A DNA stretch of 64,000 nt, taken from Basidiobolus meristosporus CBS 931.73 (lineage: Eukaryota > Fungi > Basidiobolomycota). Under the pieces are notes generated by a model, which was given only the letters and a program-made list of their open reading frames with translations, made no database searches and had not been told where the DNA came from. The stretch spans positions 1 through 64,000 of the forward strand of contig MCFE01000178.1 in assembly GCA_002104905.1 (NCBI GenBank). The letters run 5' to 3'. Both the position numbers and the translations under genes were made by a program. This document shows positions 1,775-35,269 of the stretch, piece after piece (within the stretch, counting starts at the first letter, position 1; each line of letters starts with the position of its first letter).

Positions 1775-3600
1775 ATGGACAAGACTACTTTGACTCAATG
1801 CTGTTAGAGAAGAGAAAAAGGACCATGCAGCTACTGTGGCAAGCCTGTCAGCCATGAAGTACACGGACAGCATAGGAAGCATTACAAGAATTACGGCCAG
1901 TTTTTTCCATACAAGTCATATCTAATCATTCATCAGTCACAACTGTACCAACATTATCTTGCCAGTCAGTTGATACTTCTATATTGGCACCTGGCTGTCT
2001 CTATCATCTTGCTAAAACTGAGTCAGGTGAGTTTGTGATGCCTTTAGGCTCACCTCAGCCTTCTGAATATGGCATGCAGAGTGATAGCTCTGAAAATGAA
2101 GGTCCAGTGATGGATTTTGAGCCTATCTCCCAATAACAACAAGACCACATATGAGCCTTGTCAAATACCTATATGAGATGAGACAACACCTGTGAAAGCA
2201 AATGCCAAGGATACTTTATGGAGCCAAGTGAGTCCAATAATTGATCTACTGGTGAATGATGTATTGGTGTGGCTAGAGAAGTGGCGCATTTCCACTAATA
2301 TCAGAAATGGGGGCTTTGAGGATTTAATACTATTTCTTGCCACTATCATACTGGGATGCAATGCAAGATGTACATAGTACAAGTGGACAACTATCAGGCA
2401 GCTGAAAACATATGATCCAGAGACTGTCCTGATTCCAGCATATGTCAACAATTGCATGGCATTCACATCCAAAAATGTTACTAATTATAACATGTCCAAA
2501 TTGTCAGGAATCCACCACCATTGAGGGAAAATATTGTTTATACCCCAGATATATTCCAGTCATACCCCATTTGAGGAAGCTGATGCAGTCCAACAAATAT
2601 TGCAAAGCTATACAGTACCACACTCAGTATCAGTCAAGTGCAAACAGATTTAATATATAAAATGGTAAACATTTTGAACAGCTAAGAATCAAGTGCTACT
2701 TTGAAGCTATGTATGACCAGGCCTTTGCCTTAGCACTAGATGGATTTTCATTAAACAAGTACTGTACCAGCAAATCCTGCTGGCCACTGATTCTCATCAA
2801 TCTGAATCTGCCACCCATCTTATGGTATCAGAGCAATAATCTGATGGTAGTCTTACAGGTATCTTGGCCTAAATCACCGTCCAACCTGGATAGCTACCTG
2901 TATCCATTGCTGGATGAGCTTTGTATGCTTTTCAGTGCAATAGCAGTAAATGGCCATCAGACTTGTTCCAATGTACCCTGCCAGGGCATGTGGTGCAATC
3001 CAGAGTCTCCAAGAGCAATTGGGTGTGATATTGTAGCTACCTGTAGGCAGGATTACTCTTGGACATTTTGCACCATGTGGGAAATTCATGCACACTATGG
3101 CACAATCTGGCACAATGAGGCTGGCACAAATGATTGCACCCACTTGTAATGTTTGCATCACGTGCACAATTGGATACTTCTATTATGGTAGTTAAAATTC
3201 AGTATTTAGATATGTTTCTTTAATGTAAATGGAAATAAATGCATATGACATTCTAAACTACACTGATACTTATCATTTTGCTTACCATCACTCCAATTGG
3301 ATGGTATCTCAATGATTTATTGGTCTAAAAGTATCCTGAATCTGTCAGCCCCCAATTGACTCTTCAACCAATACACAAGATATTTAGTGCAAATCAGATC
3401 AAATGGCTGCACTGGTGCCACAGATGATGTATCCATATGCAAGGTGTTTATTTATAGGGGCCCTGTCTCAAATATGAGACAACCTTCATATTGCTTATAT
3501 CAAAGATTTAGTGATCACTGATTTGCAATGGCTTGATACAGATTGCAAAAAAATGCGTTGTTTGGACCATTACAAATAATAGCAATTCAATGCAATTGCA

Positions 3601-4843
3601 TCATCTTCTCCTAGGCTTTTTTCTCACAGGGATTACTACTGAAGCATTTGGTAGTGATTCACTTTGCACACCCAAACTACTTTCTTGTTGACTATCCTCT
3701 TGGCTACTAGTGTATTTGTAGTCAGTATTTGCCTCCTAGTTGATGAGTGCAATGCTGCAGCTTAGCCGCGCTGAATTGCTCTGGATGCAACTGAGCCGGC
3801 CTGCAGTGCTACGCGCTGACACATTCTTTTACTTGCTAAGGGCTCTGGTGGTGGAGGCCCCTCATGTGGGTCATCATCAGTCAGTTCACCAGAAGAAACT
3901 TGCTGATAGTCAGGTGTAATGGCATGTGCAGACACAACTTGATGCACCGGTATGGCCCTTGGCTGAGTTCAATGTGATGCCGCTTGTTGATGCTACTTGG
4001 CCCGCTCCAATGGACTTATGTCTTTTTGAGTAGTTTGGTGGGTTCTGCTGGTTTTACTCTGAAGCGCACATGTTGACCCAATACGTATTGAGTTAATGTG
4101 CGGTGCTCTTGTGAAGGGTGTTGCGTAGTTTGGACTGATGTGTGCTGGTGTGCTGAAGTTGCAAGGGATGGTGGGAAATCCAGCAAGGAGTGCTGGCACA
4201 ATCTAGACAATGTTGCTTGCAGTCTGCATTCTTCCTCTTGAAGCTCACCTTCTGATTCCTCACTGTATTCACTTACCCTCTGTCTAATACTTTGGAACTG
4301 TTGCCTGGATGGGTCCTGGGTATATTGCTCTCAGAAGCCACTTAGCTCTACTAATATATAACGTAATACATCAGTCCTTTGAGGCAAAAACTCCTTCAAA
4401 ATCTCTTTAGTTCCCAAAGTCAAGGCACAAACGGATGTGTCCGGCCTGTACTAAGCAAATTGCGCTTAAAATTGTTCCTGTGCAGCTTCCTCATCAAATC
4501 CCCTCACTCTCAGCTCATTCTTGACTTCAATACTTGTCTTGTTAAATATCCTTTGACATATATCTGCTGGCATCTTGATGTAGAGCTCATGCCACAGCTT
4601 TCTACTCAGGTTCTTCCATCTCTGTTGACTCTCCAAGGTATCTAGTTCTGCTAGATTAATGAGTAGTGCCCAAATATCTGTATGAAGGCTCATCAAAGAC
4701 ACTTGGGCCATACTGAAACCATTTGGCAAGAACTCAAATAGATCTGACATCACCTTTTCTGGTCTGGACCATGCTTTTGAGCTGGGGGATGGGTTTTGTC
4801 TGCATTGAACTAAAGATGAGTTAATACTTGGTACAGGGACCAT
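3601..4843 (-). pseudogene. PHIS element second gene (possible Myb/SANT-like DNA-binding partner), interrupted
   Basis: ORFs 4466-4843 and 4016-4210 share a frame across a few stops; W-spaced motif AWSRPEK..DIW..QRWKNLSRK; a downstream frame ends VRKKPRRR*; the ATG region is conserved at 63784. Confidence 0.5.
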
Positions 4844-5202
4844 AGTGACAGATTTGGATACTTTATCAATGGTGTACTGGCATCAACCCGGTCTTATATG
4901 AAATATATACAAAAACTAATGTGATTGTTGAATTTTCCATATATTATGCATGATGCATCTTGGATTGCATTGACATGGATCAGATCACATCAATTGCAGA
5001 TGTCCTATTTGATTATAGACTTGTGGGTAAAACATCAATAAAAACACCCAGCCATTGTTTGAGGATGATTCTTGCAACATAATGATGGGATACATGTCAA
5101 TTGATGGAGATTTAATCATAATGCATGAAAAATCAGATAAATAAAGCTGATTGCACCAAATTGATTCAAATCACCTCAGCCTAATCCTCCAGCAATTTTA
5201 GT

Positions 5203-6051
5203 ATGACTTACTCATCTGAACAGTCTTTTCTCATCAATCCCCTTACTACCACTGGATTTCCTTTTGACACACTCAAGAAGATCTGTACAAAGTACTGTGG
5301 TCCATCTACCCCAATCTACTCAAGGAGATCCCTTGTTAAGCTTCCCTGCTATCACAAGAACTATTGCCCTACAAGGTTTCATCCCACCATTCATGGCAAC
5401 AAAAGTCCAAGAAGCTTTCATTCCTAGCTGACAGCAATGGAGAACCACCTTGCAGAGGGTATGATTGGCTTAGAGCAAGCATGGAGTACTAGGTTCAGAA
5501 GTTCCAATAGACTTCCATATCCCAGAGTGTTTAGTAACAGGTTCCATATAAGGAATATTGTGGATACCTTCCCAGTCAGGATTAACAGACCTTCTAGAGG
5601 GCAGAGGCACTTTTATTCTGGCAAATGCAAGGCACACTGTGTGAAGCTTCAAGCACTGTCTGACATTGAGGGTAAGATCATCTGGTTTAGTGGGCCATTT
5701 GCTGGAAGTAGGCATGACAATGCACTCTGGGTAGAGAATCATCCAGAATACAGTAGAGGGGAGAAATATGCGGCAGACTTAACATATATTGGAGAGGAGT
5801 GTCAGAGATTAGGATGTATTACAGCTTATAGGAAGCCAAGGAATGGTGTGCTTTGCAGTGAGCAGAAGCCCTACAATGAGATATTTAATCATTTCAGAGT
5901 GAGGGTAGAGCATACACTTGGATATCTGAAAAGATTCAACATATTGGCCGGTAAATACAGAGGAAAGTTATATATAGGAGAAAACAGCAGAATAGGTAAA
6001 TAAGTCAAGATACTTATCAATGCACAGTATACTCATACAAGAACACATTAA
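5203..6051 (+). pseudogene. DDE transposase, IS5/ISL2/Harbinger-like (DDE_Tnp_4-like), with in-frame stops at 5425 and probably 6001
   Basis: ORFs 5203-5427 and 5437-6003 are in one frame; motifs IVDTFP.RINRP, FYSGK..H..KLQ, GPFAGSRHD, AADLTYIG, RVRVEHTLG supply D-D-E. Confidence 0.85.
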
Positions 6052-7117
6052 CTGAGAGATATGTGTCTGGAGCGTTATGAAGAGTGAATAAAGCAAGGAA
6101 AGCACTACTCTGATTAACATAAGTAAGATTGAGTAAAACTACTAGTAACTATATCCTACCTCTGGCATTATAGTAGAAATCGTAGTGCCAGATGGTACAA
6201 GATCAATCCGGCACTATAAACAGGCTAGCACTATATGGCCCTATCCAATGGAATAACTCTATCAAGTAAAAGCACAATTTATTATCTGCATTGGAGATGC
6301 CCTGGCCATCAGCAAGTTAGCAGGTTATTCTGGGCACAGTGGATGGTATTACTGTCAAATGTCTGAGATACAGGGGATTTATTCCATAACTCAATACTAA
6401 GAAATTCTTTGTGGATATTCAGGAGGTATTCATGAAAGAATTGGTGTCAACCAAGTATATGTTTGCAAGATGTATATGTTGCCAGCAGTACAAGGTATAT
6501 GGCAACTATGCAAGTATCACACTCAAAAGCTGTAAAGTTGAGGTGATAGAAGTACGTCAAATGTGGCTGGTGTGAGTGTTTGTAGAGGTTAGTATGCAGG
6601 AGGCCTTAGTTTTTTTTTATTTAAACTATATGTAGAATACCCAAGGTAGTAATGGGTAAGCAAATAAAGAAGGGCAATTCTACTGTGGAATACAGGGATT
6701 GTGCAAGAGGAGGTAGAAGAAGAGAATACCATTTAGTAAATTGACATATCAGCATTATTCAGAACTGCTCTAGGCTCTCATACTGCCAGTATAATGCCAT
6801 CAGAGTCTTGTTGTGAGGCTGCTAAGATACTATCAAGTTTCTTGCCAAATAAGACAATTGGATGTCCTGACCAGTTGGATCCACTTTTAATAGTTATAGA
6901 GCACAAAAAGACCGCAAAAATACCATGCAATTTATGTCACAGCACCAATCAAATCTTGTCCAGTCTTATCTCTTTAAATGGTAGTCAAAATAGGAAAACA
7001 TTGTTGTAATCCTGTGGTAAGACTGTTAGAGGGTCACTAGTTCCAAGCTGGTGGTATTTTGACGGTTTCTAAACAGGATCCTGATGGCTAATCTGGATTG
7101 GATCCACCTGTGGGACC

Positions 7118-7134: not shown

Positions 7135-8508
7135 GTCTGTTTCAAGAGTGTTTGTGACACCTTAAGGCTCACCCTAGCCTTTTGAATATGGCAGGCAGAG
7201 TGATAGCTCCAAAGAAGCAGGCTCACTGATGGATTGTTAGCCTATCCTCCTTAGCAACAGTACCCTACATGAGTCCTGCAAAATGTTATTATGCAAGGAG
7301 ACAACACCTGTGGAAAAAAATGCCAAGGATACTTTATGGAATCAAGTGAGCCCAGTAATTCATCTATTGGTGAATGATGTGAAAAACATTGTTCACACTT
7401 GGGATATATTCCAGTACTATCACATGTAAAGAAGCTCATGCAGTCCAACATATATTGTTAAGCTACAAAGCACCGCACTTAGTATCAATCAGGTGCAAAC
7501 ATATCCAATATACTTGATGGCCTACATTGAAATAGTTGAGAAGCAAGGGCTACTTTAAAGGTTTGTATGACCATGCCTTTGCTTTGGCTCTTGATGAATT
7601 CTTGTTAAACAGGTACTCTACCAGCTTATCTGGCTGGCCACTGTATCTCATTGGCCTGAAAATGCTACCTATCTTATGGTATCAGAGCCAAAATATATTG
7701 GGAGTTTCACTGGTATATGGGCCTAAATCACCATCCAACCTGGATAGCTACTGTATTCATTGCTGGATGAGTTTTGTATGCTTTACAGCATGATAACAGT
7801 AAATGTAGGTCATGTAAAGCTCATATGATTATCTGCACTGGAGATACCCCAGCCATTGGCAGGATAGGTGGCTTTTCTGGGTCCAATGAAGAGTATTGCT
7901 GTCAGATGCATGAGATCCAAGGTACTTATACCACAACTGACACACATTAGTACTACCCAAATACCAACATTAAGTACATTGTCTTTCCATGGAGAGAATG
8001 TACAGAGGTCATCATGCCAATCCAGCTAAGTTGGCAAGCTATAGGCCATTTGACAGATAAAGAGTTAGCAAGAAACCAGAGATATTTGGGATAGAGGGTA
8101 TTTGTTGGAGCAAAAGCTTTCCACTGGGAGCAATACACTTGCTTTTCAACAATGTTTAAAGCTGATTACCAAGTTGTACATGGGGCATCTCAATCTAAAT
8201 GAGTTCTTTGAGATACCAGAGAAATTTGAAAGAATAGGCACACCATATTTTAGAGTATTGGCTATTCTAAGTACTTCTCACAGGCTCTAATCAGCATTCA
8301 TACACATGTGCAGCAATAGAAGTGGAAGGACTGGAGAAGCTGGGTATGTATTTCTTCAAGTTGTATTCTGAAGCCATTTATACAAAGAGTAGATTGACAA
8401 CATCCCTATACTGATGACCTAGTTGTACATGAAGCATTTCAAGTTAAACTTGCCCTTTGAGATACTGGAGAAATTTGAAAGAATTGGCAAGATATATCTT
8501 AGAGTATT

Positions 8509-9242
8509 AGACTAGTTCTGTTGGATAGTGCCACATTGAGCCATGAGTGCCAAATGGTGCCATTGAATGACAGAAAGGCATAGTGGACCTAAACTTGGCC
8601 TCAGATTGTGATATATAGCTCTTCATCCTCATGCAAAGCAGCCCTTGTGTTTCATCTATTGTGCTGGAGAAAAATCCATTTTTTGACCTTTTTTTTTGGA
8701 TCAGTGTTGCACAGGATGTGTAAGAGAACAGAAGGAATGAAGACATGCATCTGGTACTCAATACCCATGGCACTCTGAACCTAGCTCCTGTGGCTTGTAT
8801 GATGTCACAAAAATGCATGGCACTATCTTAGGACACTGCTCCTATCAGGCACTATATTTAAATATTAGCCCTAAAGTAAAGCCTATATAAAGCACTTATA
8901 GTGCCAGATAGTACCAGTGGAACAAGATAGTGCCATACATTTTTGTGACTTGATACAAGCTACTAAAGATAGTTTCAGAGTGTCATGGGTATTGAGTACC
9001 AGATGTATGCCTTCATTTCTTTTGTGCTCTTATACATACTACACAACATTGATTCAAAAAAAAGGTCAAAAAATAGATTTTCTCCAGTACAATGAGTGAA
9101 ACAGAGGGGCTGCTCTGCATAAAGATTCAGAACTATGTTTCACACTCAGTGGGCAAGTATAGGCATACTTGGCCTCCCTAGCACACTATGGCATCATTTG
9201 GCACTCATGGCTCAATGCGGCATCATCCAATGGAACATGTCT
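8509..9242. mobile_element. 734-bp foldback MITE, TSD ATT
   Basis: Ends agactagttctg and gaacatgtct; ATT on both flanks; empty site agagtATTggct seen at ~8250. Confidence 0.9.
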
Positions 9243-11386: not shown

Positions 11387-12998
11387 ACCTATGAGAAATT
11401 ATTGTGATGTTCACATAAAAAGGCCATTGCAAATTCTTACCCATGTAACTATGACGTATTGATTCCATCAGAACACCATGCAAGGACTGTAAAACAATAA
11501 TTGAATCCAAAATATCATAAAAAATTGTGTCAAAATTTTTCAGCACAACAATACAAAGAGTCTGCATTTTTCCTTCAGTGAGCACGCTTTCCCCTACACC
11601 TTTTTTGGTTGTAGCCCTGCTTGTTGCACTGAATGTCAAAGCAAGTTGTTGTCCAACTATTCTTCTGCTGCTGTCAGTGGTGGGGTGTGGTTTGGAACCA
11701 GATGGCTTTGCTTTATCTTTTTGGTGGCATATATATGGAATTGAGTAAAACTAAAGGGGAGATGGCATTACATATGCATGGGTATGTGGCGCCAAAACTT
11801 TGTTTATAATGTGTACTATGGCAGGTCATCATTGAATTTGACATTCATGCAGGTGCAATGTCTCATGTACAAGACTGGCTTATATTTGCATGAGTATTGC
11901 CAAAAAAGTGATGTAATAGAGTTAAGTTGTTGAGTGTCTTACTGTTTGCCCCATGAACAAGACTACTTTCACTCAACACCCTAAGAGAAGAGAAAAAAGA
12001 CCATGTAGCCATTGTAGTAAGCCTCACAGCAATGAATCATACCAGCAGCATTCAAAGCATCACAAGGATCATGGCAAGTGTTTTGCTACACAAGTTATAC
12101 TTGACCACTCACTAGTTGTTACTGTACAAACAATGTCTTGCCAGCCACCTGATACTTCTGTTGCAGCATCTGGATGTACTTGTCAGCTTGTGCAAACTGA
12201 GTCAGGAGAGTTTGTGACACCTTTAAGCTCACCCCAGCCTTCTGCATATTGCATGCAGAGTGATAGCTCTGAAGAAGCAGGCTCACTGGTGGATTGTGAG
12301 CCTATCTTCCCTAACAAGAGTACCTGGCATGAGTGCAGCAAAATCCCATTATGCAAGAGACCACATCATTTGAAAAAAATGTCAAGGATACTTTATGGAA
12401 TCAAGTGAGCCCAGTAATCCATCTACTGATGATTGATGTGATCTTGTGGCTAGAGAAGTGACATGCTTTCACTAATATCAGTAATGGGGGCTCTGAGGAT
12501 TTACTCCTACTTATTGCCAAATTCATTCTAATACGCAACTTGTTCATGGTATTAATTGAAAATTGTAATGCAGCTGGCAACCTATAGCCCAGAGACTGTC
12601 CTGCTTCATGCATGTGTCAAAAATTGTATAGCGTTCACATCGCAATATTCCTCCATTGTAAGGTGTCCAACTTGTCAGGAATCCACAACCATTGGGGGAA
12701 AACATTTGAAGTAGCTAAGAAGCAAGGGCTACTTTGAAGGTATGTATTACCCTGCCTTTGCCTTGGATCTTGATGCATTCTCAAGAAACAAGTACTCTAC
12801 CAGCAAATCCTGCTGGCCACTGATTATCATCAGCCTGGATCTGTTGCCTATCTTTTAGTATCAGAGCCAAAATCTGATGGTAGTCTCACTGGTGTCTGTG
12901 CCTAAATCACTGTCCAACCTGCATAGCTACCTGTTTCTATTGCTGGATGAATTTATGTACTTTCCAGTGCAATAACTGTAAATGGCCGTCATGGGAAA
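11387..12998 (+). mobile_element. CMC copy: left TIR, partner gene mostly deleted, transposase 5' half
   Basis: Starts (a)cctatgagaaatt; ORF 11953-12408 is the transposase N-terminus; cut by the Gypsy-A LTR. Confidence 0.7.
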
Positions 12999-14240
12999 TG
13001 TTGTGTTGTATGATGATTAGTTTGGGGCTTGTTCTACAATGTAGAGGCTAATCAGCAATATACAGCAACTTGCAGTATGCTAATACTGAAATAGTTTATT
13101 GGGAGTTTGATATACCATTAGAAGAAATAACTTTCACTAATTTCCTCAATCTTGGGCTCAAAGTATACTCTAGGCAGTGTTTATCACTTCTACAGCAGTG
13201 TTCTGACCTTCTGTCAACTAATGGGCTTATTTACTTTTATAGTAACTTTTCCTTATTTGGAAGTCACTTTCCTTTCTGAGAAAATATTTCCTAATATGGA
13301 AATTCTGAACTCCCCTTTAACCTAAAGGGGTGTGTTGTAAAAGTCTCTAAAGGGGTCTTTAGACCTAAAGGGGTGTCTAAAGGGGTGTCTTTAGAGTAAA
13401 GGGGCTTCTTGTAGTGGTCTCTAAAGTGGACTTTACACTAAAGGGGTGCCTAAAGGGGCTTCTTTAGAGTAAAGGGGTTTCTTAAAGGGGTCTCTAAAGG
13501 GGTTTTTAGACTAAAGGGGTGTCTAAAGGGTGTCTTTAGAGTAAAGGGGTTTCTTAGAGGGGATTTTTCCAACAGAAAAGTGGTAGTTTCTTGTAGAACT
13601 TAGATTGGATTCTTGTGAGCTTTGCAGTCTCTTTACTGATGTAGTACCAATCAAAGTCAGAATACTCAACAGTGCAAGTGATGCAGGGGAAGTCTTATAA
13701 CCTTTAAACTTGTAATTGTAGTGTGGAGATTCTGGAAAGAGAGGCTCTCCCTTTATTTTTCAGCTGGGGAAGTCATATATATGAAAATTTTGAAGGATCA
13801 AAGTTTTTGGGTGATTGCGCAAGCAATACACATGATACAAAGCTAAAATTTTGCAGTGGCGCAGATTGGACATAGGCGCAGCACCTGTGAGAACTTCACG
13901 TGATTTGACAGGCTGGTTCAAAAGTTACACGCAATCAAAGTCACCATAGTAATCCTAGCAATAAGGCATAGTATATATAATAGTTGGACTCTTTTGGTCA
14001 TAACTCCTTAAGTACTGCTTCAAATGAGCTGTAATTTGAAACATGTGTTGGCTACTATGTGTTCTGTATGACATAATATTCTTGGGTGGATTGCTTGTCA
14101 GGGTCTGGAGCATTTGTTCTTCAAAGTTGGAAATTCTTGATCTTTCACTTGTGTGTTACAATAGCAAAAAGCAAAATAAAGAAATGAGTGCAATATTGGT
14201 TTAGAGATATTGTAGTAATGGAATACTTTCCATTACCACA
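12999..14240 (-). repeat. Gypsy-A 3' LTR (1242 bp)
   Basis: TG...CA; about 97% identical to 19257-20467 by hand alignment. Confidence 0.95.
13321..13562 (+). repeat. TAAAGGGG array inside LTR-A (second copy ~19579-19790)
   Basis: 12 perfect and 3 variant units in the left LTR; the right LTR lacks one 30-bp block. Confidence 0.9.
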
Positions 14241-14248
14241 AGTCTCCC

Positions 14249-17200
14249 TTAACTTTGAGAAATAATGCCCTCATTATTGCTTCTGATATGGAACTTCTTC
14301 AATCTGTTACCAGATTGTGTCAGTGCAAGTGGTGTACCGTCAAGTTCTGCTAGTTTGTAAGATCCATTTTTGTTTGCATGTATGATCATGTAGGGACCTT
14401 GCCATTGCATATCCAGCTTGGATGCCTTGTTTCTTTGGCTTTTTGTGTTGTGAAGTAGTATCAACTTACCTACTTCTAACAATGTTTTTCTTGGGCATTT
14501 TTGAGCGTCAAAGTTCTCCTTGCCAGCTATTCTGGATTTCTTCAGGTTTTCTGTTGCATTCTGTTGCAGAGTGTGTGCTTGTTGAATCTGTTGTACTCTT
14601 GCTAGCAATAGCTCTGATGTTGTCATGGTTGGTTTCCATGGGAGCGTAAGCTAATTCTCAAAAGATATGTCTATTGGCAAAACAGCTTCATGTCCATATA
14701 TTAAAAAAAATGGTGTATACCCTGTACTTCTTTTAACCTTAACTCTATCAGCCCAAATTGCTGCATGAAAGTTATTTGCCCACTTGTTGGGTTCTTCATA
14801 GCTAAGCTTTGCTAATGTGTTTGCAAAAGCAGAATGTCCACGTTCAACTGGTGAATTTGCTTGTGGGTGGTATGGCGTAGTATATATAAGCTTGGTTCCA
14901 TGCTTTGTTGCTAGTGCTTGTGTTTCATAAGATCCACATTCTCCATTGTCTGCAATAAGGGTGCCAACTGAACCATGTCTGAGATATACATCTTCTTTGA
15001 GAAATCTTGCTACTGCTTTTGCATTGGCTTGCTTCAGCATTCTAGCCTCTATCCAACCAGTAAAGTTATCACAACAGTCCACCACATACTTATACCCAGC
15101 TGTTGCCCTTGGTAAATGTATAATATCTACATGTGCAATTTGCCAAGCATAAAATGTGTATATACTGTGAAGTGGTTCATGCATCTTTTGGTTGTCTCTT
15201 CTTTGACATGGAATACATGACTTCACATATTCTTTTGTGTTGGTGTACAGCATTGGCCAAAAATACCGTAAAGAGATTTTTGCATATGTTGATGTAATTC
15301 CCTTATGACCTCCTGATTCAGACTCATGCAATTCTTGAATGATCTTCTCTTGATCATGCTTGTTATGTATATACCGTCAAGGAACTCCATGTTTGCTTTT
15401 TCTGAAAAGTGTGCCGTCATGCAGTACAAACTTCAGAGACTTCTTTTTAAAATTTGTGTGTTGATTTGTGGGAATATCAGCAGGAACTTTGAGTGATGTA
15501 AGAAACTCCTTGATTTGTTGATAATTGCTTTGTATCATATGTCTGAATGAGAATCCAAGACTAGTGTTTTCAAGGAACTCATCAATCTCATCATCATCAG
15601 TTAAGTACGGTGAATTTGGTTGCTTTCTAGATAAGGCATCAGGTCCTTTGTGATTGGCTCCTGGTATGTGTTGCAGCGTAAAGTCAAAGATCTGGATGTA
15701 TGATATCCACTGTGCTAGAATAGGATCAGGCAAAAGCTCCAACTTATTCAACATTCCTAATAATGGCTTGGCATCAACTTCCAGTGTGAAGTGTACTCCT
15801 AATAAGTATGGCTTTAGCTTTTTGAGTACATAGAGTACTCCCAGTGCTTCTTTCTTGATAGACAGTTAGTTAAGCTCATTCCCTTTGAATAGTCCACTAA
15901 GATATTTGCAAGGTTGTTGATGATGATCTTTTGAAACTTGAATCATGATTCCACCAACCCCAATTCCAGAGCTATCAACTGATACAATGATTGGTTGTGA
16001 ATCAATAACACTGTAGTCTATAGCTGCTAAGACAGGTGGCTTTGATAATGACTCAAGCAATGTCAACATAGCATTTGCCTGTTCTTCATGCCATTCAAAT
16101 TTCTGGTTTTTCTGTAATAACTGAGTCAGTGGCTTAGCAATTTGAGCATAGTTCTTGATCCAGATTCTGAATAGACCAGTAAGTCCTAATAATTGTCTGA
16201 CTTGATGAATATTCCTTGGTGGCTTCCAATTCAGTGCCAATGAAAGTTTTGCAGGATCAGGCAATCTCCCTTTTTCAGTAACAAGTTCACCTAGAATGAT
16301 TGCTTTGTCGTAGCCAAACTTGCATTTGGCTCCTGATACAGTCAGACCAGAAGCTTGAAGTTTCTTCATGACCCTCTCAACAGTGCATATGTGATCATAA
16401 ACTTATCTTCTTACTTGAGGTAAGACATGCAATGTATCTTTTTCTCTGGACTTATTCTTAACTGCAATGTCATCAAGAAATAGTCGGCATATTTCAGGGA
16501 AACAGTCATCCAAAACTCAAATCATTGCACGTTGATAATTTTGGACAGAGTTTGTCCATCCTTGAGGAATTCTTGTCATCCTTATGAGTCCTATTGGTGT
16601 ATCCATAGCGGTGAAATCTCTTGAGGTAGGATCCAGAAGTATTTGGTCATATCCTGAATAAAGATCCAATGTTGTAATCAGAGGATATCCAGTATAATGA
16701 CTCAATATACTCATGTCTGTATGGGTGGTTGCATAGCATCTTTGATGGTGACCTTATTCAAATGCTGTACGTCTTGAATAAACCGTAGACTTCCATTTTT
16801 CTTCAACTGGTGTAAACCAGGGATTGCGATAAGGTCCATAGCTATATTCAATGACTCCACTTTGAAATCTTGATTGTAGCATTTCAATTACTTTGTTCAG
16901 TAATCTTGAGGGAATAGGATATGATCTCAGTGTCCATGGTGTATGTTCAACGGTATGGATCTTAACTGGTGGAAATAGCTCTGTGGATAAACATCCTCTT
17001 TGTGCATCATTAAATGCAAAGACATTGTCATAGCATTGTAGCATAGTCAAAAAGAGACTTCTCTCCTCAGTGGAAAGAGTAGTCCCAATAGCCAACTCCT
17101 TGAGCTTCTCTTCTGTGAGTCTGATTTTGTCATATTTGTGCAAAGGCTCCATTTGAGGATTGTCGTGGGCAGATGGTGAGATTCCAGTAGATACTGGCTT

Positions 17201-17371
17201 TGCTTTCAATGCAACTGGCTTATACTTAGTATTTGTCTTACTTGTTGTCGATGGAATGAAGTGTTGATCATAAAACAAAATATCCTTATGAACCTGTATG
17301 TTTTTTACTGGAATGGTGTCTGCATTTCTTGGATTATTCTCTTCTGCTGCACAAAAGGTTGCCCTTCTTTT
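14249..17371 (-). pseudogene. pol: Gypsy-A pol (RT, RNase H, integrase) with frameshifts
   Basis: KYKPVALKAKPV; LDLYSGYDQ..PQGWTNSV; FLDDI; SVDSSGIGVG; integrase AHVDII..DNFTGWIEA..LIADNG..PQANSPVERGH; no chromodomain seen. Confidence 0.9.
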
Positions 17372-19189
17372 TCAATCGTCAGATGTGATTGTCAGCCATA
17401 AGCTTCCATCAGGTCTATTATCAGCTTGTAGAAGAGACTTTCTCTCATATGGTCGTCCCAACAATACCTCAAAAGTGGGTCCATTGGCAACAATGAAAAA
17501 GGGAGAAGTAACCCTGATTCCTCCAATTTCAATTGGTACAGAGTGACAAAGTCCAAGCATCTTCTCTGTTGCACCTGTAGCAGTTCTCATATTCCAGTCA
17601 ACTTCTGTCAATGGCAATTTGATTTTTTCAAAAGTCATAGTGGTGATAGCATTGATTTCTGATCCAGAATCAAAAACACATTCCACTTCAACATTGTTGA
17701 TTGTAGCAGCATAGCTTCCTGTTGTTATAGAGTAAAAGGCTTTTTCTACTTCAAATTGTAGTTGTTCACTTGATAACGTTGTTGATGACTGTTCTTGATA
17801 ATTCTTCAGGATATCTTTGTTCATAGGCTTAACCATTTCTGGTAGTAGTTGACTGAGATTGTTGATGGCGGTGAACATTTCTTGATTTGTAAGTTGTGGA
17901 AATGGAGATTTCCAGAATTTGTCAATAACTTTCTGTGTAATTGCAGTAGTGTCATACTTAGATTGAGGTTGCAAGTGTTCTTTTTGGATTTTTGATGTTT
18001 CTGGCTGTACTGGTATTTCAACAATTGGCTGATTTCTTTTGTCGTTACACACTTTTTTAGGATTGTTCTCTGTAGAAACATACTTTCTCTTATCAATAAG
18101 GCAATTAAACTCTTCAACTTCCTCTTTTTCCATTAGATATTCTTGGACCTGCCCTGATGGATCTGATATTGTGAGTACGTAACGTTCATTGCTTGGAATT
18201 TCTGCAGTCTTTTGGATTTGTATGAAATTTGATGTCTTGGTGCTTTTACTTGATTCTTCTTGAGCAAGTACATAGGACCTCATTCCACCATAACCTCTGT
18301 TGATAGGCAAGGGGTTTCCAGCAATATCACAGATCTTCCCATAACAATCAATCATAACCTTATGACTGTCAATATCAATATTAAATATTTGACAACCATA
18401 ACGGCTATGCTCAGCAGATTCACAGTACACACAATATTTGGTTTGCTGTGGATAATTACTGGTTGTTTTGGGATTTTCTGGTCTTGCCTTGTTGAGGCTT
18501 GATGATGGTACACTTTGAGAGTCCAACTTAGGCGTCAGCTTTCCTAATGCATCAATTAATTCATTAACCTGATCACTTTGTGTGTTATTTGTACGATGAA
18601 GAATTTGTTTAGCTGGAGTGGAAATCTTCATTTGAATATTAATGGAATCCATGACTTGTCTCCCTGATTGATAGTTTAACACCATTTGTTTAACATTGTT
18701 GTAGGAGCTTGTAGCCTGAACTTGGTGGCTAATGGCATTACGTATTTCAGGAGGCATATTCATCAGAAAATAGTTTCTTTGATAAAATCTTGGAATTCCA
18801 ATAGCTGCTTCAACATGCCTTGCTTTTGACTCAAACTTTTGAATGTACTTCTGCAAGGGTTGGGTCTTGTTGTAAGGCATTTCTAGCTCATTTAGTGTAA
18901 CAAACTGTGCTTCTTTTTGGTATTCAGCTAAAATAGCTTGTTGAGCAGTGTCCCAGTTATAGTTAGCGCCAACAGATATCTTAAATGGGTCCAAACTTTG
19001 TAAGAATCTTGATACTTCAACTTCACAGAGAAAGGGAAACAATTGGATTTTGTTCTTGTGTGATAGCTCAAATGCTGCAGCTATATTGTTAAACTCTTCT
19101 AGAAACTCAGTAACATTCTCTCCTGAGAATTTTACTGGAATGGCACCTTTAAAAGTGGCTATTAACTCTGGGAGTGGTGTATCAGTCAT
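17372..19189 (-). CDS. gag: Gypsy-A Gag plus aspartic protease, 605 aa open
   Basis: Zinc knuckle CVYCESAEHSRYGC; protease CVFDSGSEIN; in frame with the downstream pol ORF 16754-17278 across one TGA. Confidence 0.9.
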   Translation of the reverse strand: MTDTPLPELIATFKGAIPVKFSGENVTEFLEEFNNIAAAFELSHKNKIQLFPFLCEVEVSRFLQSLDPFKISVGANYNWDTAQQAILAEYQKEAQFVTLNELEMPYNKTQPLQKYIQKFESKARHVEAAIGIPRFYQRNYFLMNMPPEIRNAISHQVQATSSYNNVKQMVLNYQSGRQVMDSINIQMKISTPAKQILHRTNNTQSDQVNELIDALGKLTPKLDSQSVPSSSLNKARPENPKTTSNYPQQTKYCVYCESAEHSRYGCQIFNIDIDSHKVMIDCYGKICDIAGNPLPINRGYGGMRSYVLAQEESSKSTKTSNFIQIQKTAEIPSNERYVLTISDPSGQVQEYLMEKEEVEEFNCLIDKRKYVSTENNPKKVCNDKRNQPIVEIPVQPETSKIQKEHLQPQSKYDTTAITQKVIDKFWKSPFPQLTNQEMFTAINNLSQLLPEMVKPMNKDILKNYQEQSSTTLSSEQLQFEVEKAFYSITTGSYAATINNVEVECVFDSGSEINAITTMTFEKIKLPLTEVDWNMRTATGATEKMLGLCHSVPIEIGGIRVTSPFFIVANGPTFEVLLGRPYERKSLLQADNRPDGSLWLTITSDD

Positions 19190-19232
19190 TCTTGTAACGT
19201 TTCTTGATGCTTGTATAGTGAAAGGTTCAAAC

Positions 19233-19250
19233 TACCCAGGTCCTCCACCA
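19233..19250 (-). promoter_or_regulatory. Primer-binding site, probably tRNA-Ala
   Basis: Sense TGGTGGAGGACC, 6 nt from the 5' LTR, complements a tRNA end ...UCCACCA (U70 C71 C72 A73 CCA, the tRNA-Ala acceptor end). Confidence 0.6.
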
Positions 19251-19256
19251 AATACT

Positions 19257-20467
19257 TGTTATGTTGTATTATGATTAGTTTGGGGCTTGTTCTACAATGT
19301 AGAGGCTAATCAACAATATACAACAACTTCCAGTATGTTAATACTGAAATAGTTTATTGGGAGTTTGATATACCGATAGAAGATATAACTTTCACTAATT
19401 TCCTCAATCTTGGGCTCAAAATATACTGTAGGCAGTGTTTATCACTTCTACAGCAGTGTTCTGACCTTCTGTCGACTAATGGGCTTATTTACTTTTATAG
19501 TAACTTTTCCTTATTTGGAAGTCACTTTCCTTTCTGAGAAAATATTTCCTAATATGGAAATTCTGAACTCCCCTTTAACCTAAAGGGGTGTGTTGTAGAA
19601 GTCTCTAAAGGGGTCTTTAGACCTAAAGGGGTGTCTAAAGGGGTGTCTTTAGAGTAAAGGGGCTTCTTGTAGTGGTCTCTAAAGTGGACTTTACACTAAA
19701 GGGGTGCCTAAAGGGGCTTCTTTAGAGTAAAGGGGTTTCTTAAAGGGGTCTCTAAAGGGGTCTTTAGACTAAAGGGGTGTCTTAGAGGGGACTTTTCCAA
19801 CAGAAAAGTGGTAGTTTCTTGTAGAACTTAGATTGGATTCTTGTGAGCTTTGCAGTCTCTTTACTGATGTAGTACTGATCAAAGTCAGAATACTCAACAG
19901 TGCAAGTGATGCAGGGGAAGTCTTATAACCTTTAAACTTGTAATCGTAGTGTGGAGATTCTGGAAAGAGAGGCTCTCTCTTTATTTTTCAGCTGGGGAAG
20001 TCATATACATGAAAATTTTGAAGGATCAAAGTTTTTGGGCGATTGCGCAAGCAATACACGTGTTACGAAGCTAAAATTTTGCAGTGGCACAGATCGGACA
20101 TAGGCGCAGCACCTGTGAAAATTTCACGTGATTTGATTGGCTGGTTCGAAAGTTACACGCGATCAAAGTCACCATAGTAATCCTAGCAATAAGGCATAGT
20201 ATATATAATAGTTGACTCTTTTGGTCATAACTCCTTAAGTACTGCTTCAAATGAGCTGTAATTTGAAACATGTGTTGGCTACTATGTGTTCTGTATGACA
20301 TAATATTCTTGGGTGGATTGCTTGTCAGGGTCTGGAGCATTTGCTCTTCAAAGTTGGAAATTCTTGATCTTTCTCTTGTGAGTTACAATAGCAAAAAGCA
20401 AAATAAAGAAATGAGTGCAATATTGGTTTAGAGATATTGTAGTAATGGAATACTTTCCATTACCACA
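19257..20467 (-). repeat. Gypsy-A 5' LTR (1211 bp)
   Basis: TG...CA; TATA-like tatatataat at ~20190; adjacent PBS. Confidence 0.95.
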
Positions 20468-22345
20468 ATTCTCCACACAACATTTAAGACAGAGTAGAGA
20501 ATGGATACAGTAGTGGCAGAGATCTACGCATTCAGCTTTATGCTTGTAGTGTAGCTGCTCAAATCCTGTCACAAACTCCTCACACAACAGCTGTAGATGT
20601 GTCAAGTTGGCATTGGTGATCTGCTTCTGGATAAATATTCCTACAATGTCCACATATGACTCCCAATGCTTGCAATGTACTTTTGGTAGGGATGGCTTCA
20701 GAACACCACTTGAATAAGTACATATCCAGTTCATCCAGTCTTTTCATATGTATTGTTGCATATGCATGTGGATATTAATTGGAGCCCATGAGAAGTAATT
20801 AGGGTTGCGGATACTCTATAATATCTTGCCAATTCTTTCAAATTTCTCCGGTATCTCAAAGGGCTCATTTAGCTCACAATGCCCCATGTGCAACTTGGTC
20901 ATCAGTATAGCAATATTGTTGAAAAGCAATTGCATTGCTCCCAGTGGAAAGCTATTGCTCCAACAGATACCCTCTATCTTAAGTATATCTTGTTTCCAAT
21001 TGATTCCATATTCTGGCCAATGGCTTATAGCTTGCCAACTTTGCTGCAATTTCATGCTTACTTCTGTACATTCTCTTTGTGGAAAGATGATGTTCCTAGT
21101 GCTGGTATTTGGGTAATAATAATGTGTGTGAGTTATGAAGTAAATCCCCAGGATCTCACACATTTGACAGCAGCACTGTTCATTGTGCCCAGAAAAACCT
21201 GCTATCTTGCTGATGACTGGGGTACCTCCAATGCAGATAATAATATGCGCTTTTACACAATCACCATTTACTGTTATCTGCTGGAAAGCATACAAAATTC
21301 ATCCAGCAATGGATACAGGTAGCTATCCAGGTTGGACAGTGATTTAGGCCCAGATACCAGTGAGACTACCATCAGATTATTGCTCTGATACCATAAGATG
21401 GTCATACATACCTTCAAAGTAGCTCTTGCTTTTTAGCTGTTTGCGATGTTTGCCATCAAATATATTGGATATGTTTGCACATGATTGATACTGAGTGCAG
21501 TACTGTATAGCTGTGTAATACTTGTTAGACTGTATCAGCTTCCTCAGACAGGGTACAATCAGAATATATCTGGAGTGTGAACAATGTTTTCCCTCAATGG
21601 TGGTGGATTCCTGAAAATTTGGACACATTGCAATGGTAGCATTTTTGGATGTGAATGCCATGCAGCTGTTAACACATACTGGAATCAGGACAGTCTCTGG
21701 ATCATATGTTGCCAGCTGCATAACGGTTTCCTACTTGTACCATGTACATGGTAAGTTGCATCCAGTATCACTTTGGCAAGAAGTATTAATAGATCCTCAT
21801 AGCCCCCATTACTGATATTAGTGGAAATGCACCACTTCTCCAGCCACAACATTATATCATTCACCAGTAGATGGATTATTGGGCTCACTTGGCTCCATAA
21901 AGTATTCTTGGCATTTGTTTCAATGGGTGTTGTCTCATGGCATATAGGAATTTGACTGGGCTCATATGTGGTACTGTTGTTAGGAGCAATAGGCTCAAAA
22001 TCCATTAGTGAACCTTCTTTGTCAGAGCTATCACTCTGCATGCCATATTTGGAAGGCTGAGGTCAGCCTAAAGGTGTCACAAGCTCACCTGACTCCAATT
22101 GCGCAAGGTGACTAAGTTGGCCAGGTGCTAATATAGAAGTATCAACTGGCCAGCAAGATAATGTTGGTACAGTAGTGACCAATGAGTGGTCAAATATGAC
22201 TTGGGTGGCAAAACACTAGCTGTGATCCTTGTAATAGTTCCTATGCTGTCTGCATGCTTCATGGCTGAGAGGCTTGCCACAATAGCCACATGGTCTTTTT
22301 TCTCTTCTCTTACGGTGTGAGTCAAAGTAGTCTTGTCCCTGGGCA
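20468..22345 (-). pseudogene. CMC transposase, 5' two-thirds
   Basis: ORFs 20348-20734, 20816-21295, 21377-21721 and 21685-22041 carry the same motifs as the + strand copies. Confidence 0.85.
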
Positions 22346-25958: not shown

Positions 25959-26019
25959 CACACTATGGCATCATTTGGCACTCATGGCTCAATGTGGCAC
26001 TATCCAACAGAACAAGTCT
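25959..26019. repeat. Foldback MITE terminal fragment
   Basis: ggcactcatggctcaatgtggcactatccaacagaacaagtct followed by att. Confidence 0.85.
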
Positions 26020-26732: not shown

Positions 26733-28539
26733 TGTGGTGATGTTTAAATCCAAGGGAGAGATAGGTCATCACTTCTCAAGTGTTAAGCATGTGGGGCATT
26801 CACTGGGTGCAATAGACTTGTTCCGTTGGATAGTGCCACATTGAGCCATGAGTGCCAAATGATCCCATAGTGTGCCAGAGAGGCCAATTGAGCCTCTACC
26901 TGGCCATAGGGTGTGAAACATAGCTCTGCATCTTCATGCAAGGCAGCCCCTGTGTTTCACCCATTGTGTTGGAGAAAATCCATTTTTTGACCTTTTTTTT
27001 TGGATCAACGTTGTGCAGGATATGTTAGGGCACAAGCAGATTGAAGATATGCATCTGGTACTCAATACCCATGGCACTCTGAATCTAGCTCCAGTAGCTT
27101 GTATCATGTCACAAAAATGAATGGCACTATCTTGGTCCACTGGTACTATCTGGCACTATAAGTGCTTTGTATAGATCCTACTTTAGGGCTAATATTTAAA
27201 TATAGTGCCAGATAGTACCAGTGGACCAAGATAGTGCCATTCATTTTTGTGACATGATACAAGCTACTGGAGCTAGAATCAGAGTGCCATGGGTATTGAG
27301 TACCAGATGCATATCCTCAGCTCTCCTGTGCTCTTACACATCCTGAGCTACATTGATCCACAAAAAAAGGTCAAAAAATGGATTTTCTCCTGCGCAATGG
27401 GTGAAACACAGGGGCTGCTTTACATGAAGATGCAGAGCTATGTTTCACACTCTGTGGCCAAGTGTAGGCTCACTTGACCTCTCTGGCACACTATGGCATC
27501 ATTTGGCACTCATGGCTCAATGTGGCACTATCCAACGGAACAAGTCTAATAACTTCTGGCAAAAGCTTGCTAGGAATACTTGAGTTCTATCTCTAATCTA
27601 ATGTGATGGGGAAAAAAGCCACAAGCTTGTCAAGCAAAAACTATTGAGCTTCAATCCCCAACTTAGTTAGTGTCATAGCAAAAGTATGTGCAGGGTTCAG
27701 CACCCTTTGAGATGACTATGTACTAGAGCTTCCAAAGTCAAAACAACTGTAAACTCCACCAGCAGGGACTTGATAAGAGTGAAGCTGTGGTCAATAGTAA
27801 CAAAGACAGAAAAGTATCTTTGCCTGTGCAAGAACAAACATGGGAAAGAATCAAATATAATGAAGGATACCTACTCTGAGTATTCCTCACAAGTAGTGCC
27901 TCCAAGGTCAGTTGGCTGTCAGTGCAGTTGCTGGGAAGTGTCCTGTGGTCTGGGATTGGAGGTTCAGGTAGCAGCAGGTAGCAGTGACTGCACTAGTGAA
28001 CAAGTCAGTATATTGATAAAAGGGATGCCAATTTATTGTTGAGCAATTGCCCCCCTTATACACTTTTCTCACTGGCAAAGTGATTACAAATCATGATGTT
28101 CCAGAAGGTCCTGGTGGTCAAATAGGAATCTTAATGCCATCAGAATGAGCTAAGAATGCTCTAGGTAGGTGCCAGAAGGTTATAAAAGGCACAGCATACC
28201 CAACCAACCAGGGATCAGTATTCCAAAGGCAGTGTAACATAGGGATGCTGTATATACTATGAAAATGGTAAGGATGGTAATGCAGTGTTGTCATGTAATA
28301 CAGGTTCTGATGCAGGTACCTGCCTAATGTAGACTCACTTATATCAAGCAATCTTACATAAAGTGAGGGATAATGTATGTAATAAGGTAAGCAGGTGTGA
28401 TAGTAAGCCAGCTTATGGGATAGTACTGATTAAGTAAGACAGGTAGGATAAAACTAATATAAGGGTAGTAACAAATAGGGAAGTAGAAAATATGGGAATG
28501 AGCACATCTGCCAGTGGGTGTCAATGTAACCTCACTACA
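26733..28539 (-). mobile_element. Solo LTR, family D, with an inserted MITE; flanks ccag/cctg
   Basis: TG...CA; collinear with 23463-24541 once 26814-27547 is removed. Confidence 0.8.
26814..27547. mobile_element. 734-bp foldback MITE, TSD AAT
   Basis: AGACTTGTTCCGTTGG...CCAACGGAACAAGTCT; ~345-bp inverted arms around a ~40-bp spacer; empty site gggtgcAATaac at ~23540. Confidence 0.95.
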
Positions 28540-29884: not shown

Positions 29885-30170
29885 ACCTGTTCTGTTGGAT
29901 ATTGCCACATTCAGCCATGAGTGCCAAATAATGCCATAGTGTGCCAGAGTGGCCTTGGATGAATGTTGTGCAGGATGTGTAAGATTGCAGAAGGACTAAA
30001 GTGATGCATTTGGTACTCAATAGTCATAGCACTCTAATTCAGGCTCAAGAGGCTTTTAACATGTCAAAAAACGCATGGCAATATCTTGGTCCACAGGTAC
30101 TATCTAGCACCATATTTAGATATTAGTCCTGAAGTGAACCTATACAAAGCACTTATAGTGCTCCACTATA
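29885..30170. repeat. Degenerate, internally deleted MITE (left arm and centre)
   Basis: acacctgttctgttggatattgccacattcagccatgagtgcc... plus the central spacer. Confidence 0.7.
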
Positions 30171-33814: not shown

Positions 33815-34548
33815 AGACTTGTTCCGTTGGATAGTGCCACATTGAGCCATGAGTGCCAAATAGTGCCATAGTGTGCCTGAGAGTCATAGCAGACCTAAAC
33901 TTGGCCACAGAGTGTAACATATAGTTCTGCATATTCATGCAAAGCAGCCCCTGTGTTTCACCTACTGTGTGGGAGAAAATCAATTTCTTAACCTTTTTTT
34001 TGGGATCAAAATTGTGCATGACGTAAAAGAGCACAGACAGACTGAAGATATGCATCTGGTACATTATACCCATGGCACTCTAAATCTAGCCCCACAGGCT
34101 TGTAGCATGTCACAAATATGCATGGCACTATCTTGGTCCACTGGTACTATCTGGCACTATATTTAAATATTAGCCCTAAAGTAGAACCTATACAAAGCAC
34201 TTATAGTGCCAGATAGTACCAGTGGACCAAGATAGTGACATGCATATTTGTGACATGCTACAAGCCTGTGGGGCTAGATTTAGAGTGCCATGGGTATTAT
34301 GTACCAGATGCATATCTTCAGTCTGTCTGTGCTCTTTTATGTCATGCACAATTTTGATCCCAAAAAAAAGGTTAAAAAATTGATTTTCTCCCACACAGTA
34401 GGTGAAACACAGGGGTTGCTTTGCATGAATATGGAGAACTATATGCCACACTTTGTGGCCAAGTTTAGGTCTGCTATGACTCTCAGGCACACTATGGCAC
34501 TATTTGGCACTCATGGCTCAATGTGGCACTATCCAACGGAACAAGTCT
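33815..34548. mobile_element. 734-bp foldback MITE, TSD TAT, inserted in the host MITE's central spacer
   Basis: Intact termini with CpG retained; tat at 33812-33814 and 34549-34551. Confidence 0.95.
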
Positions 34549-34761
34549 TATGACTAATACTCAGATCTAATGCCAGATTGTATCAGTGGACCAAGATGGT
34601 GCTTTGCATTTGGTGACAAGTTACTAGCAACAGGAGATAGACTCAGAATGCCAAGGGTATTGAGTACCAGATGCATGTTCCAGTCCTTCTGTGCTCTTAC
34701 ACATCATACACAATATTGATCATAAATGAAAGGGCAACAAGTGAATTTTCTCCAGCACAAT

Positions 34762-35269
34762 AGACTTGTTCTGTTGGAGAGTGCCACATTAAGGCATCAG
34801 TGCCAACTGATGCCATAGTGTGCCAGGGAGGTCAAGTTAGCCTATACTTGGCCACAGTGTGTGAAACATAACTCTGCATCTTCATGCAAAGCAGCCACTG
34901 TGTTTCACCCATTGTGTTGGGGAAAATCCATTTTTTGATTAATTTTTTTGGATCAATGTTGTGCAGGATGTGTAAGAGCACAGAAGAACTGAAGACATGC
35001 ATCTGGTACTCAATACCCATAGCACTCTGGATCAAGCTCCTGTGGCTAGTACAATGTCACAAAAATGAATGGAACTATCTTGGTCCACTGGTACTGTCTG
35101 GCACTATAAGCGCAATATATAGGTCTTACTTTAAGGCTGCTTTGCCCAAAGATGCAGAGCTATGTTTCACACTCTGTGGCCAAGTATAGGCTCACTTGAC
35201 CTCCCTAGCAAACTATGGCATCATTTGGCACTCATGGCTCAATGTGGCACTATCCAACAGAACAAGTCT
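34762..35269. mobile_element. 508-bp internally deleted MITE, TSD AAT, inserted in the host MITE's right arm
   Basis: Both termini present; aat at 34759-34761 and 35270-35272; flanks rejoin as ttctccagcacAATgtgtg. Confidence 0.9.

Follow-up and report, generated by a model that had tools for sequence, protein, structure and literature searches.

A decayed two-gene transposon, very probably of the Pangu (Harbinger2) group, and foldback MITEs with matching ends in Basidiobolus meristosporus

Introduction

What kind of transposon is the decayed two-gene insertion of 3302 bp found in the genome of the fungus Basidiobolus meristosporus CBS 931.73, and what moves the gene-less foldback sequences that lie around it? 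The question is raised by a stretch of 64,000 nt (contig MCFE01000178.1, positions 1-64,000, forward strand; hereafter the window), in which the insertion occupies positions 2959-6260 on the plus strand. In a preliminary description of this DNA, the insertion and the foldback sequences, which are 734-bp transposable elements of the miniature inverted-repeat type (MITEs), were proposed to form an autonomous/non-autonomous pair, possibly of an uncharacterised fungal lineage of PHIS transposons. The analysis reported here makes it very probable that the insertion is a dead copy of a cut-and-paste transposon of the Pangu group (Harbinger2 in Repbase) of PHIS, and that the MITEs are moved in trans by intact relatives of this copy.

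The Pangu group was defined by a 5'-ANT-3' target-site duplication (TSD), as the preliminary description had stated, and by terminal inverted repeats (TIRs) of 11-40 bp usually starting with AG or GG; its members have a mean length of about 3.5 kb and two open reading frames (ORFs), most of the partner ORFs being devoid of known motifs (Han et al. 2015, PMC4482050). The same study placed Pangu beside the bacterial insertion sequence (IS) IS5, which has the same ANT target, and its Table S3 lists fungal families from Melampsora, Puccinia (with a 199-bp MITE), Talaromyces, Tremella and Tuber, their TSDs being recorded as ANT, AWT or ATT; the Talaromyces family, Pangu_Tsti, is 2567 bp long and encodes a 268-aa transposase (PMC4482050). 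Pangu corresponds to the Harbinger2 group of Repbase (Kojima 2025, PMC12730594). In Basidiobolus genomes, very large expansions of PIF-Harbinger and CMC-EnSpm elements have been described (Muszewska et al. 2017, PMC5751038), and the mix of Transposase_21 and DDE_Tnp_4 sequences found in the window fits that description.

Boundaries and insertion site of the element

The element is bordered by two copies of the trinucleotide ATC (2956-2958 and 6261-6263) and ends in imperfect TIRs, the left one (2959-2973, plus strand, tip AGACTTGTTCC) agreeing in 12 of 15 nt with the right one (6246-6260, minus strand), whose tip, read on that strand, is AGAGTTATTCC. This direct reading of the flanks is backed by empty sites present in the same window. 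A query in which 150 bp from the left side, ending with one ATC, were fused to the sequence that follows the right ATC gave gapless matches across the junction in four host paralogues (21129-21401, 7663-7938, 42412-42682 and 45782-45982), while a fifth paralogue (12847-12991) holds the left flank only and matches up to the junction. At 45782-45982 a single ATC stands at the empty site, in the context ...TCC ATC ATG.... Because the paralogues read ungapped across the junction, one of them with a single ATC, the insertion consists of exactly 3302 bp plus a 3-bp duplication, in full agreement with the boundaries and the ATC duplication originally proposed.

The ORF into which the element was inserted matches Pfam Transposase_21 and so belongs to a different DNA transposon. 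The host belongs to a CMC/EnSpm-like, Transposase_21-encoding family, of which the segments 2664-2958 and 6261-6420 are the parts flanking the element; at least five more decayed copies of this host family are found in the window (7518-7938, 12697-12991, 21129-21401, 42259-42682 and 45782-45982).

Two divergent genes, both inactivated

The transposase pseudogene (5203-6084, plus strand) comprises about 293 codons, with an HTH_Tnp_4-like N-terminus followed by a DDE_Tnp_4 core. The pieces of the broken frames were searched apart, being neither repaired nor joined, and the 188-aa open piece (5437-6003) matched Pfam DDE_Tnp_4 (E 5e-20) and DDE_Tnp_1 (E 4e-8). An IS5-like DDE core, the hallmark of PHIS, therefore aligns over the catalytic region of this frame, where the catalytic D, D and E residues are all kept in the family alignment and the YSGK motif is found. 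That the frame can be read through rests on a comparison with P0001, an intact relative of 294 aa encoded on a 1250-bp Logan contig (L001; sample SRR949943) that was found by a word-based search. When P0001 was compared with the window by tblastn, its residues 10-294 aligned without gaps on positions 5227-6081, with 57% identity over 285 residues; because the alignment is ungapped across the whole frame, the gene requires no intron and contains no frameshift. The compact, intronless DDE transposase with a YSGK motif that had been announced is thus borne out by both the Pfam match and the gapless alignment. The N-terminal 120 residues align to the HTH_Tnp_4 region of a more distant relative, P0002.

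Three in-frame stops interrupt the transposase frame: TAG at 5425-5427, in the helix-turn-helix region, and TAA at 6001-6003 and 6046-6048. The preliminary description had noticed the first of them, which is indeed present, and had counted it as the only one. Neither a match to the transposase piece among solved structures, nor one to its 188 aa among bacterial and archaeal genome contigs, was obtained.

The second gene runs in the opposite direction, as had been suggested. Its frame (4016-4843, minus strand) starts with 125 open codons (4466-4843), which make up the minus-strand ORF expected there, and has in-frame stops at 4466, 4451 and 4331 before its end at 4016. The two genes are separated by 359 bp (4844-5202), a presumed bidirectional promoter; this region is read as an intergenic spacer, since the divergent gene pair of a relative described below (contig L004) has an identical 359-bp spacing. 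The partner ORF gave no Pfam match even at E values up to 10, no Atlas feature match and no relative in the word-based search, and its AlphaFold single-sequence model, all-helical, is unreliable (pLDDT 55). No YqaJ or THAP match was found for either gene in the Pfam searches. The DDE_Tnp_4 match, taken together with the divergent partner frame, supports the earlier identification of a two-gene PHIS element. Each of the two frames is broken by three stops; both genes are therefore dead in this copy, which is consequently not autonomous.

Foldback MITEs

A search of the window by BLAST with one MITE, followed by inspection of the flanks, revealed three full copies, one composite copy and several fragments, so that the 734-bp foldback MITEs of the preliminary description do exist as a family. 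Each is a near-complete hairpin with arms of 347 bp and a loop of 40 bp, has no coding capacity and carries TIRs that are perfect over at least 47 nt. The full copies, all of 734 bp, are M1 (8509-9242; TSD ATT, arm complementarity 80%), M2 (26814-27547; TSD AAT, 92.5%) and M3 (33815-34548; TSD TAT, 97.4%), the last one being nested in the loop of M4. M4 itself (33442-35420; TSD AAT) is an older composite copy interrupted by M3 and by M5 (34762-35269; TSD AAT), an internally deleted MITE of 508 bp that lies in the right arm of M4. To these are added M6 (40424-40817), truncated to one arm plus the loop and with AGT as its left flank, a terminal fragment of 61 bp (25959-26019, flank ATT) and a rearranged fragment (29885-30161).

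The nest is informative regarding transposition. Removal of M3 and M5 from M4, together with one TSD copy for each, leaves 730 bp, and the pieces of M4 that flank M5 overlap in BLAST coordinates by exactly the 3 duplicated bases. The nested insertions act in this way as internal empty sites and prove that the MITE moves as a single unit, with duplication of 3 bp. In short, these sequences are smaller than about 800 bp, non-coding and multi-copy, with TIRs, perfect 3-bp TSDs and ends in common with a transposase-encoding family, as is characteristic of foldback MITEs.

The M4 nest (33442-35420) assembles copies of different ages, an older one having received both a young one, with arms 97% complementary, and a deleted one. 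It was also observed that the arms within one MITE copy are more alike (92-97%) than are the sequences of separate copies (75-83%); each MITE may have been inserted as a near-perfect palindrome derived from a different master, or else its arms may have been homogenised.

Ends and motifs common to the element and the MITEs

Over 11 nt there is no difference between the MITE tip and the left tip of the element, and 23 of 28 nt agree with the right end of the element. Beyond the tips, a 16-nt motif already reported as common to both was recovered 10 times with up to 2 mismatches, against 0.07 occurrences expected, and its 11-nt core, TAGTGCCRGAT, 23 times with up to 1 mismatch, against 2.1 expected. 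The matches to the core are nearly all located in the two subtermini of the element and, within the MITEs, beside the tips and where the arms end on the inner side. In the right subterminus of the element the core forms an inverted pair (6183-6216), and the left subterminus holds three TGGCACAA repeats (3098-3130, plus strand), which constitute a candidate protein-binding array. The same core motif occurs in L001, in the tail that follows the intact transposase gene downstream, where it is accompanied by a terminus (...GGCACTATAAAACGGAA) nearer to the MITE end than that of copy 2959-6260. Conservation of the motif between elements as diverged as these (the L001 protein being only 58% identical) suggests a protein-binding site. 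The repeats GGCAC/GTGCC were said to fill both the element and the MITE, which is true of the latter (one 734-bp MITE has 13, the mean for the window being 2.3 per kb) and overstated for the former, whose left subterminus has three and whose right subterminus has two.

The resemblance stops at the ends, the MITE arms showing no similarity to the interior of the element above that of shuffled controls. Since agreement with the element covers just 11 nt of its left end and 23 of 28 nt of its right end, and nothing of its interior, the MITE is not a deletion derivative of copy 2959-6260. This copy represents a cousin subfamily of the MITE's parent rather than the parent itself, because its right end differs at 5 of 28 positions and its left end diverges after 11 nt. 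The idea of an autonomous/non-autonomous pair is thus upheld as far as the ends, the subterminal motif and the 3-bp TSDs are concerned; the partner found in the window is, however, no autonomous element, having stops in both genes, and can at most be a passive substrate.

Target choice

Eight flanks could be read in the window: ATC for the element and ATT, AAT, TAT, AAT, AAT, AGT and ATT for the MITEs, the last two being single flanks, which reproduces exactly the list given originally. The pattern A-N-T is present in six of the eight (AAT three times, ATT twice and AGT), against a background of 8.8% among the trinucleotides of the window (P about 1e-5 for six or more of eight). By contrast, TWA (TAA or TTA) occurs in none. 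Shifting the boundaries by one base abolishes the duplications.

Relatives in other sequence collections

The word-based search with the transposase piece returned two hits only; an exhaustive HMMER search was then run with P0001, in which 1671 cluster representatives reached E <=1e-3 and 23 reached E <=1e-30; the best of them span the full length of the protein, N-terminus included. The contigs behind the top matches are mostly short pieces of metagenomes or transcripts. Two of those inspected preserve a divergent gene pair. In L004 (153-3206; about 3.05 kb) a 272-aa ORF is separated from a divergent 286-aa transposase by the 359-bp spacer mentioned above; short subterminal repeats (GGATGC) are oppositely oriented at the two ends, and the tip of the element falls within an A-run. 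An ORF of 724 aa is located just outside this element. L002 carries a divergent pair of 332 and 332 aa, with a right end reading ...CAAGCACAAGTCT followed by ATT and a left end that lies beyond the contig. No clear terminus was recognised in L003. In L006, a metagenome contig of 15 kb, the transposase relative is adjoined by an 842-aa ORF (2175-4703), the C-terminal half of which resembles, by eye, a putative Tc1/mariner-type DDE transposase.

The partner ORFs of L002, L004 and the window element are mutually dissimilar, BLASTP of the latter giving no significant match to either of the other two. Such dissimilarity agrees with what might be a fast-evolving accessory protein.

Cyanobacterial IS5-like counterparts

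Relatives with the same kind of ends were also found in bacteria. L007, a metagenome locus of bacterial-looking context, contains an IS of 1017 bp (4131-5147) with perfect TIRs starting AGACTTGTAGCG and a 309-aa transposase in which HTH_Tnp_4 and DDE_Tnp_4 are both recognised; despite the perfect TIRs, no matching flanks were found. Among its relatives on plasmids, a 1003-bp IS on Nostoc punctiforme pNPUN02 (L015, 430-1432) has the ends AGACTTGTCGGG and AGAGTTGTCGGG and an AAT duplication, and one of 1009 bp on pLBX of Leptolyngbya boryana (L014, 325-1333) has AGAGTTGTTGGG at both ends, likewise with duplicated AAT. The tips of the three ISs can be summarised as AGACTTGT / AGAGTTGT, with the AAT duplication in two of the three. 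In PGAP annotation, these ISs of about 1 kb are labelled merely as "transposase family protein". The NCBIfam model transpos_IS5_4 is the best one for the fungal and the cyanobacterial IS proteins, all of which score below its cut-off.

A terminal octamer, AGA(C/G)TTGT, is common to the fungal element, its MITEs, L002 and the bacterial ISs, with the exception of the right end of the window element, which is one position off (AGAGTTAT). Where it can be read, the target is also the same in the fungal family and in the bacterial ISs, and the difference between a C in the left tip and a G in the right one is common to the fungal element and the Nostoc IS. The fungal and bacterial transposases are only about 30% identical over the catalytic core. 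Common tips and a common target fit the published view of Pangu as the eukaryotic counterpart of ANT-targeting IS5 elements. Preservation of the octamer and target in spite of such low identity might mean that recognition of the ends and choice of the target became frozen before the bacterial and eukaryotic branches of this lineage separated, or that a bacterial element entered a forebear of this fungus fairly recently and then gained a partner gene; we regard this as a speculative and rather unlikely proposition.

Classification and alternative explanations

The Pangu features examined, namely the ANT-type TSD, the TIRs and the two ORFs, were all found in this family, and the class is assigned by these and not by transposase phylogeny. 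The likeness extends to the mostly A-N-T duplication of 3 bp, the short TIRs starting with AG, the length of about 3.3 kb, a DDE_Tnp_4 transposase without extra domains and a partner ORF without known motif. The window family departs from described Pangu elements in its new host lineage, in two of eight flanks that are off the ANT pattern (ATC and TAT) and in being accompanied by near-perfect foldback MITEs of 734 bp instead of short ones. It is a new family within an already described group, and "uncharacterised fungal PHIS lineage" was therefore too strong a designation, given that fungal Pangu families had been listed before (PMC4482050).

With canonical PIF/Harbinger elements that have Tourist-like MITEs (Ping/Pong and mPing, for instance) the family has in common a two-protein system of transposase and putative DNA-binding partner, 3-bp TSDs and non-autonomous elements apparently mobilised in trans that retain only the ends and subterminal motifs; the canonical elements, however, target TWA and not ANT, and their partner protein has a Myb/SANT or MADF domain, none of which was detected here (Pfam, E up to 10). 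ISL2EU elements differ by their 2-bp AT TSD, YqaJ-type partner and THAP domain in the transposase, whereas 3-bp TSDs and no YqaJ or THAP match were found here, and Spy elements by having no TSD and a single gene, in contrast to the 3-bp duplications and two frames of the window element. The bacterial IS5-related ISs are alike in their transposase, which has about 300 aa and combines HTH_Tnp_4 with DDE_Tnp_4, their tips and the AAT TSD seen in two of three; unlike the fungal element, they are single-gene units of 1.0 kb, without partner gene, in prokaryotic hosts. As to the MITEs, a long inverted repeat over nearly the whole length, the lack of coding capacity and movement as a unit with TSDs are those of foldback-type MITEs in general, from which the present ones are set apart by tips and a target bias that tie them to a Pangu-type transposase.

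Could the element still be a canonical, TWA-targeting PIF/Harbinger transposon, its ANT pattern arising from AT-rich surroundings or mis-set boundaries? A DDE_Tnp_4-type transposase and two divergent genes are also what canonical elements possess. Such an interpretation is nonetheless very improbable: TAA and TTA are missing from all eight flanks, the ANT excess was calculated against the window's own trinucleotides, and the boundaries, which do not tolerate displacement by one base, are established from the empty sites and from the nesting of the MITEs. A lineage apart from Pangu, born when a compact IS5-like element passed from bacteria into a fungal ancestor and later gained its partner gene, so that it would be Pangu-like only in appearance, has some points in its favour, namely that the transposase is of bacterial size (about 294 aa versus 297-309 aa), that its nearest language-model clusters are prokaryotic, that its best NCBIfam model is the sub-threshold transpos_IS5_4, as for the cyanobacterial ISs, and that the 8-nt tip, the left C/right G difference and the AAT TSD are in common with the Nostoc IS. 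We nevertheless hold it to be improbable. Identity to the bacterial transposases is limited to about 30% in the core, whereas the 23 closest clusters (E <=1e-30) have the whole N-terminus in common with P0001; the inspected contigs with a whole element or gene pair (L002, L004 and L006) look eukaryotic or two-gene; and, with Pangu already set beside IS5 and its ANT target (PMC4482050), resemblance to IS5 is precisely what membership of Pangu predicts.

With regard to the mobiliser of the MITEs, copy 2959-6260 might itself have been the autonomous master, as it has the 11-nt tip, the 16-nt motif and 3-bp TSDs in common with them and a transposase frame without frameshift in which the catalytic residues are kept. 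The stops in this frame (5425, 6001 and 6046) and the three in the partner frame, a similarity to the MITE that covers no more than 11 nt of the left end and 23 of 28 nt of the right one, and the better fit of the L001 tail to the MITE terminus make this role highly doubtful. It is likewise very improbable that the MITEs were moved by an unrelated transposase and that their common termini are coincidental. The arms, devoid of internal similarity to the element, would allow it, but the tip, the right end, the 11/16-nt motif and the length and bias of the TSDs are together very unlikely to arise by chance; moreover, the window contains no other DDE_Tnp_4 gene and, among the tip matches, no other element with these tips, although no systematic search for one was made. 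Movement in trans by intact relatives, and not by this copy, is the reading adopted here, on account of the missing internal match.

Several points weigh against assignment to Pangu with MITEs moved in trans. Membership rests on TSD, ends, length and ORF layout and not on placement in a clade; the ATC of the element and the TAT of one MITE are not ANT, which indicates a loose target rule; and the flanks number eight, from a single window. In addition, the partner ORF shows no detectable homology either to Myb/SANT families or to the partners encoded at related loci, its role being assumed by analogy, and the MITE arms are unlike the interior of the element, the true parent subfamily not being seen in this window.

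Proposed mechanism

PIF/Harbinger systems require a partner protein as well as the transposase. In the model that we propose, built on the anatomy, boundaries, TSD pattern, protein family, decay, nested MITEs and bacterial IS5-like tips observed above, the divergent gene pair of an intact family member would encode a compact transposase of about 294 aa, with a helix-turn-helix at its N-terminus ahead of the DDE_Tnp_4 core, together with a fast-evolving partner. The tips, AGA(C/G)TT(G/A)TTCC, as well as the TAGTGCCRGAT / TGGCAC repeats of the subtermini, would be recognised by these proteins; how the motifs are shared out between the two, and from which copy the transposase comes, we infer. The element would then be excised and reinserted at 3-bp, mostly A-N-T sites, which become duplicated in the process. 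Any DNA with two such ends, including a foldback of two similar arms, could be mobilised in trans, and the gene-less 734-bp MITEs would be non-autonomous riders of this type, moved by intact relatives residing elsewhere in the genome. Copy 2959-6260 has lost its function by nonsense mutations.

Genomic context

A second copy of the two-gene transposon, in a more advanced state of decay, is found on the minus strand (62862-63993); it is 77-82% identical to the first, has an internal deletion and runs toward the end of the window. A right-end piece of the same copy, with a degenerate terminus (58664-58879, minus strand), has been cut off by the insertion of a long terminal repeat (LTR) retrotransposon, a gypsy-type element (58880-62861) that splits the copy in two. 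A Ty3/gypsy LTR retrotransposon with protease, RNase H and integrase ORFs occupies 12999-20053 on the minus strand; its LTRs are 96% identical and hold a 73-74-bp tandem repeat rich in CTAAAGGGG. The gypsy-type element at 58880-62861 also forms kilobase-long inverted repeats of 88-91% identity (49200-53200 versus 59190-62660) together with a related copy located about 7 kb from it.

The whole of this window, rich in transposable elements, is extremely depleted of CpG, with 204 occurrences against about 2620 expected (observed/expected 0.08), but not of GpC, which at 3018 is normal. There are 3 CpG in the 882 bp of the transposase frame and 1 in the 885 bp of its intact relative on L001. The depletion is consistent with a decay of CpG in repeats that may have been driven by methylation.

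Significance

The locus leaves unchanged the understanding of how transposons of this class work. It provides a clean worked example of a Pangu-type family and its foldback non-autonomous derivatives in a fungus, with boundaries proven by empty sites and nesting, which can be used in the repeat annotation of this genome, and it offers TAGTGCCRGAT as a candidate cis-motif for binding studies. The one point going slightly beyond the literature consulted is that the terminal octamer and the AAT target are conserved in both the fungal family and the cyanobacterial ISs, which lends sequence-level support, beyond the transposase tree, to the published view that IS5 elements with an ANT target have their eukaryotic counterpart in Pangu.

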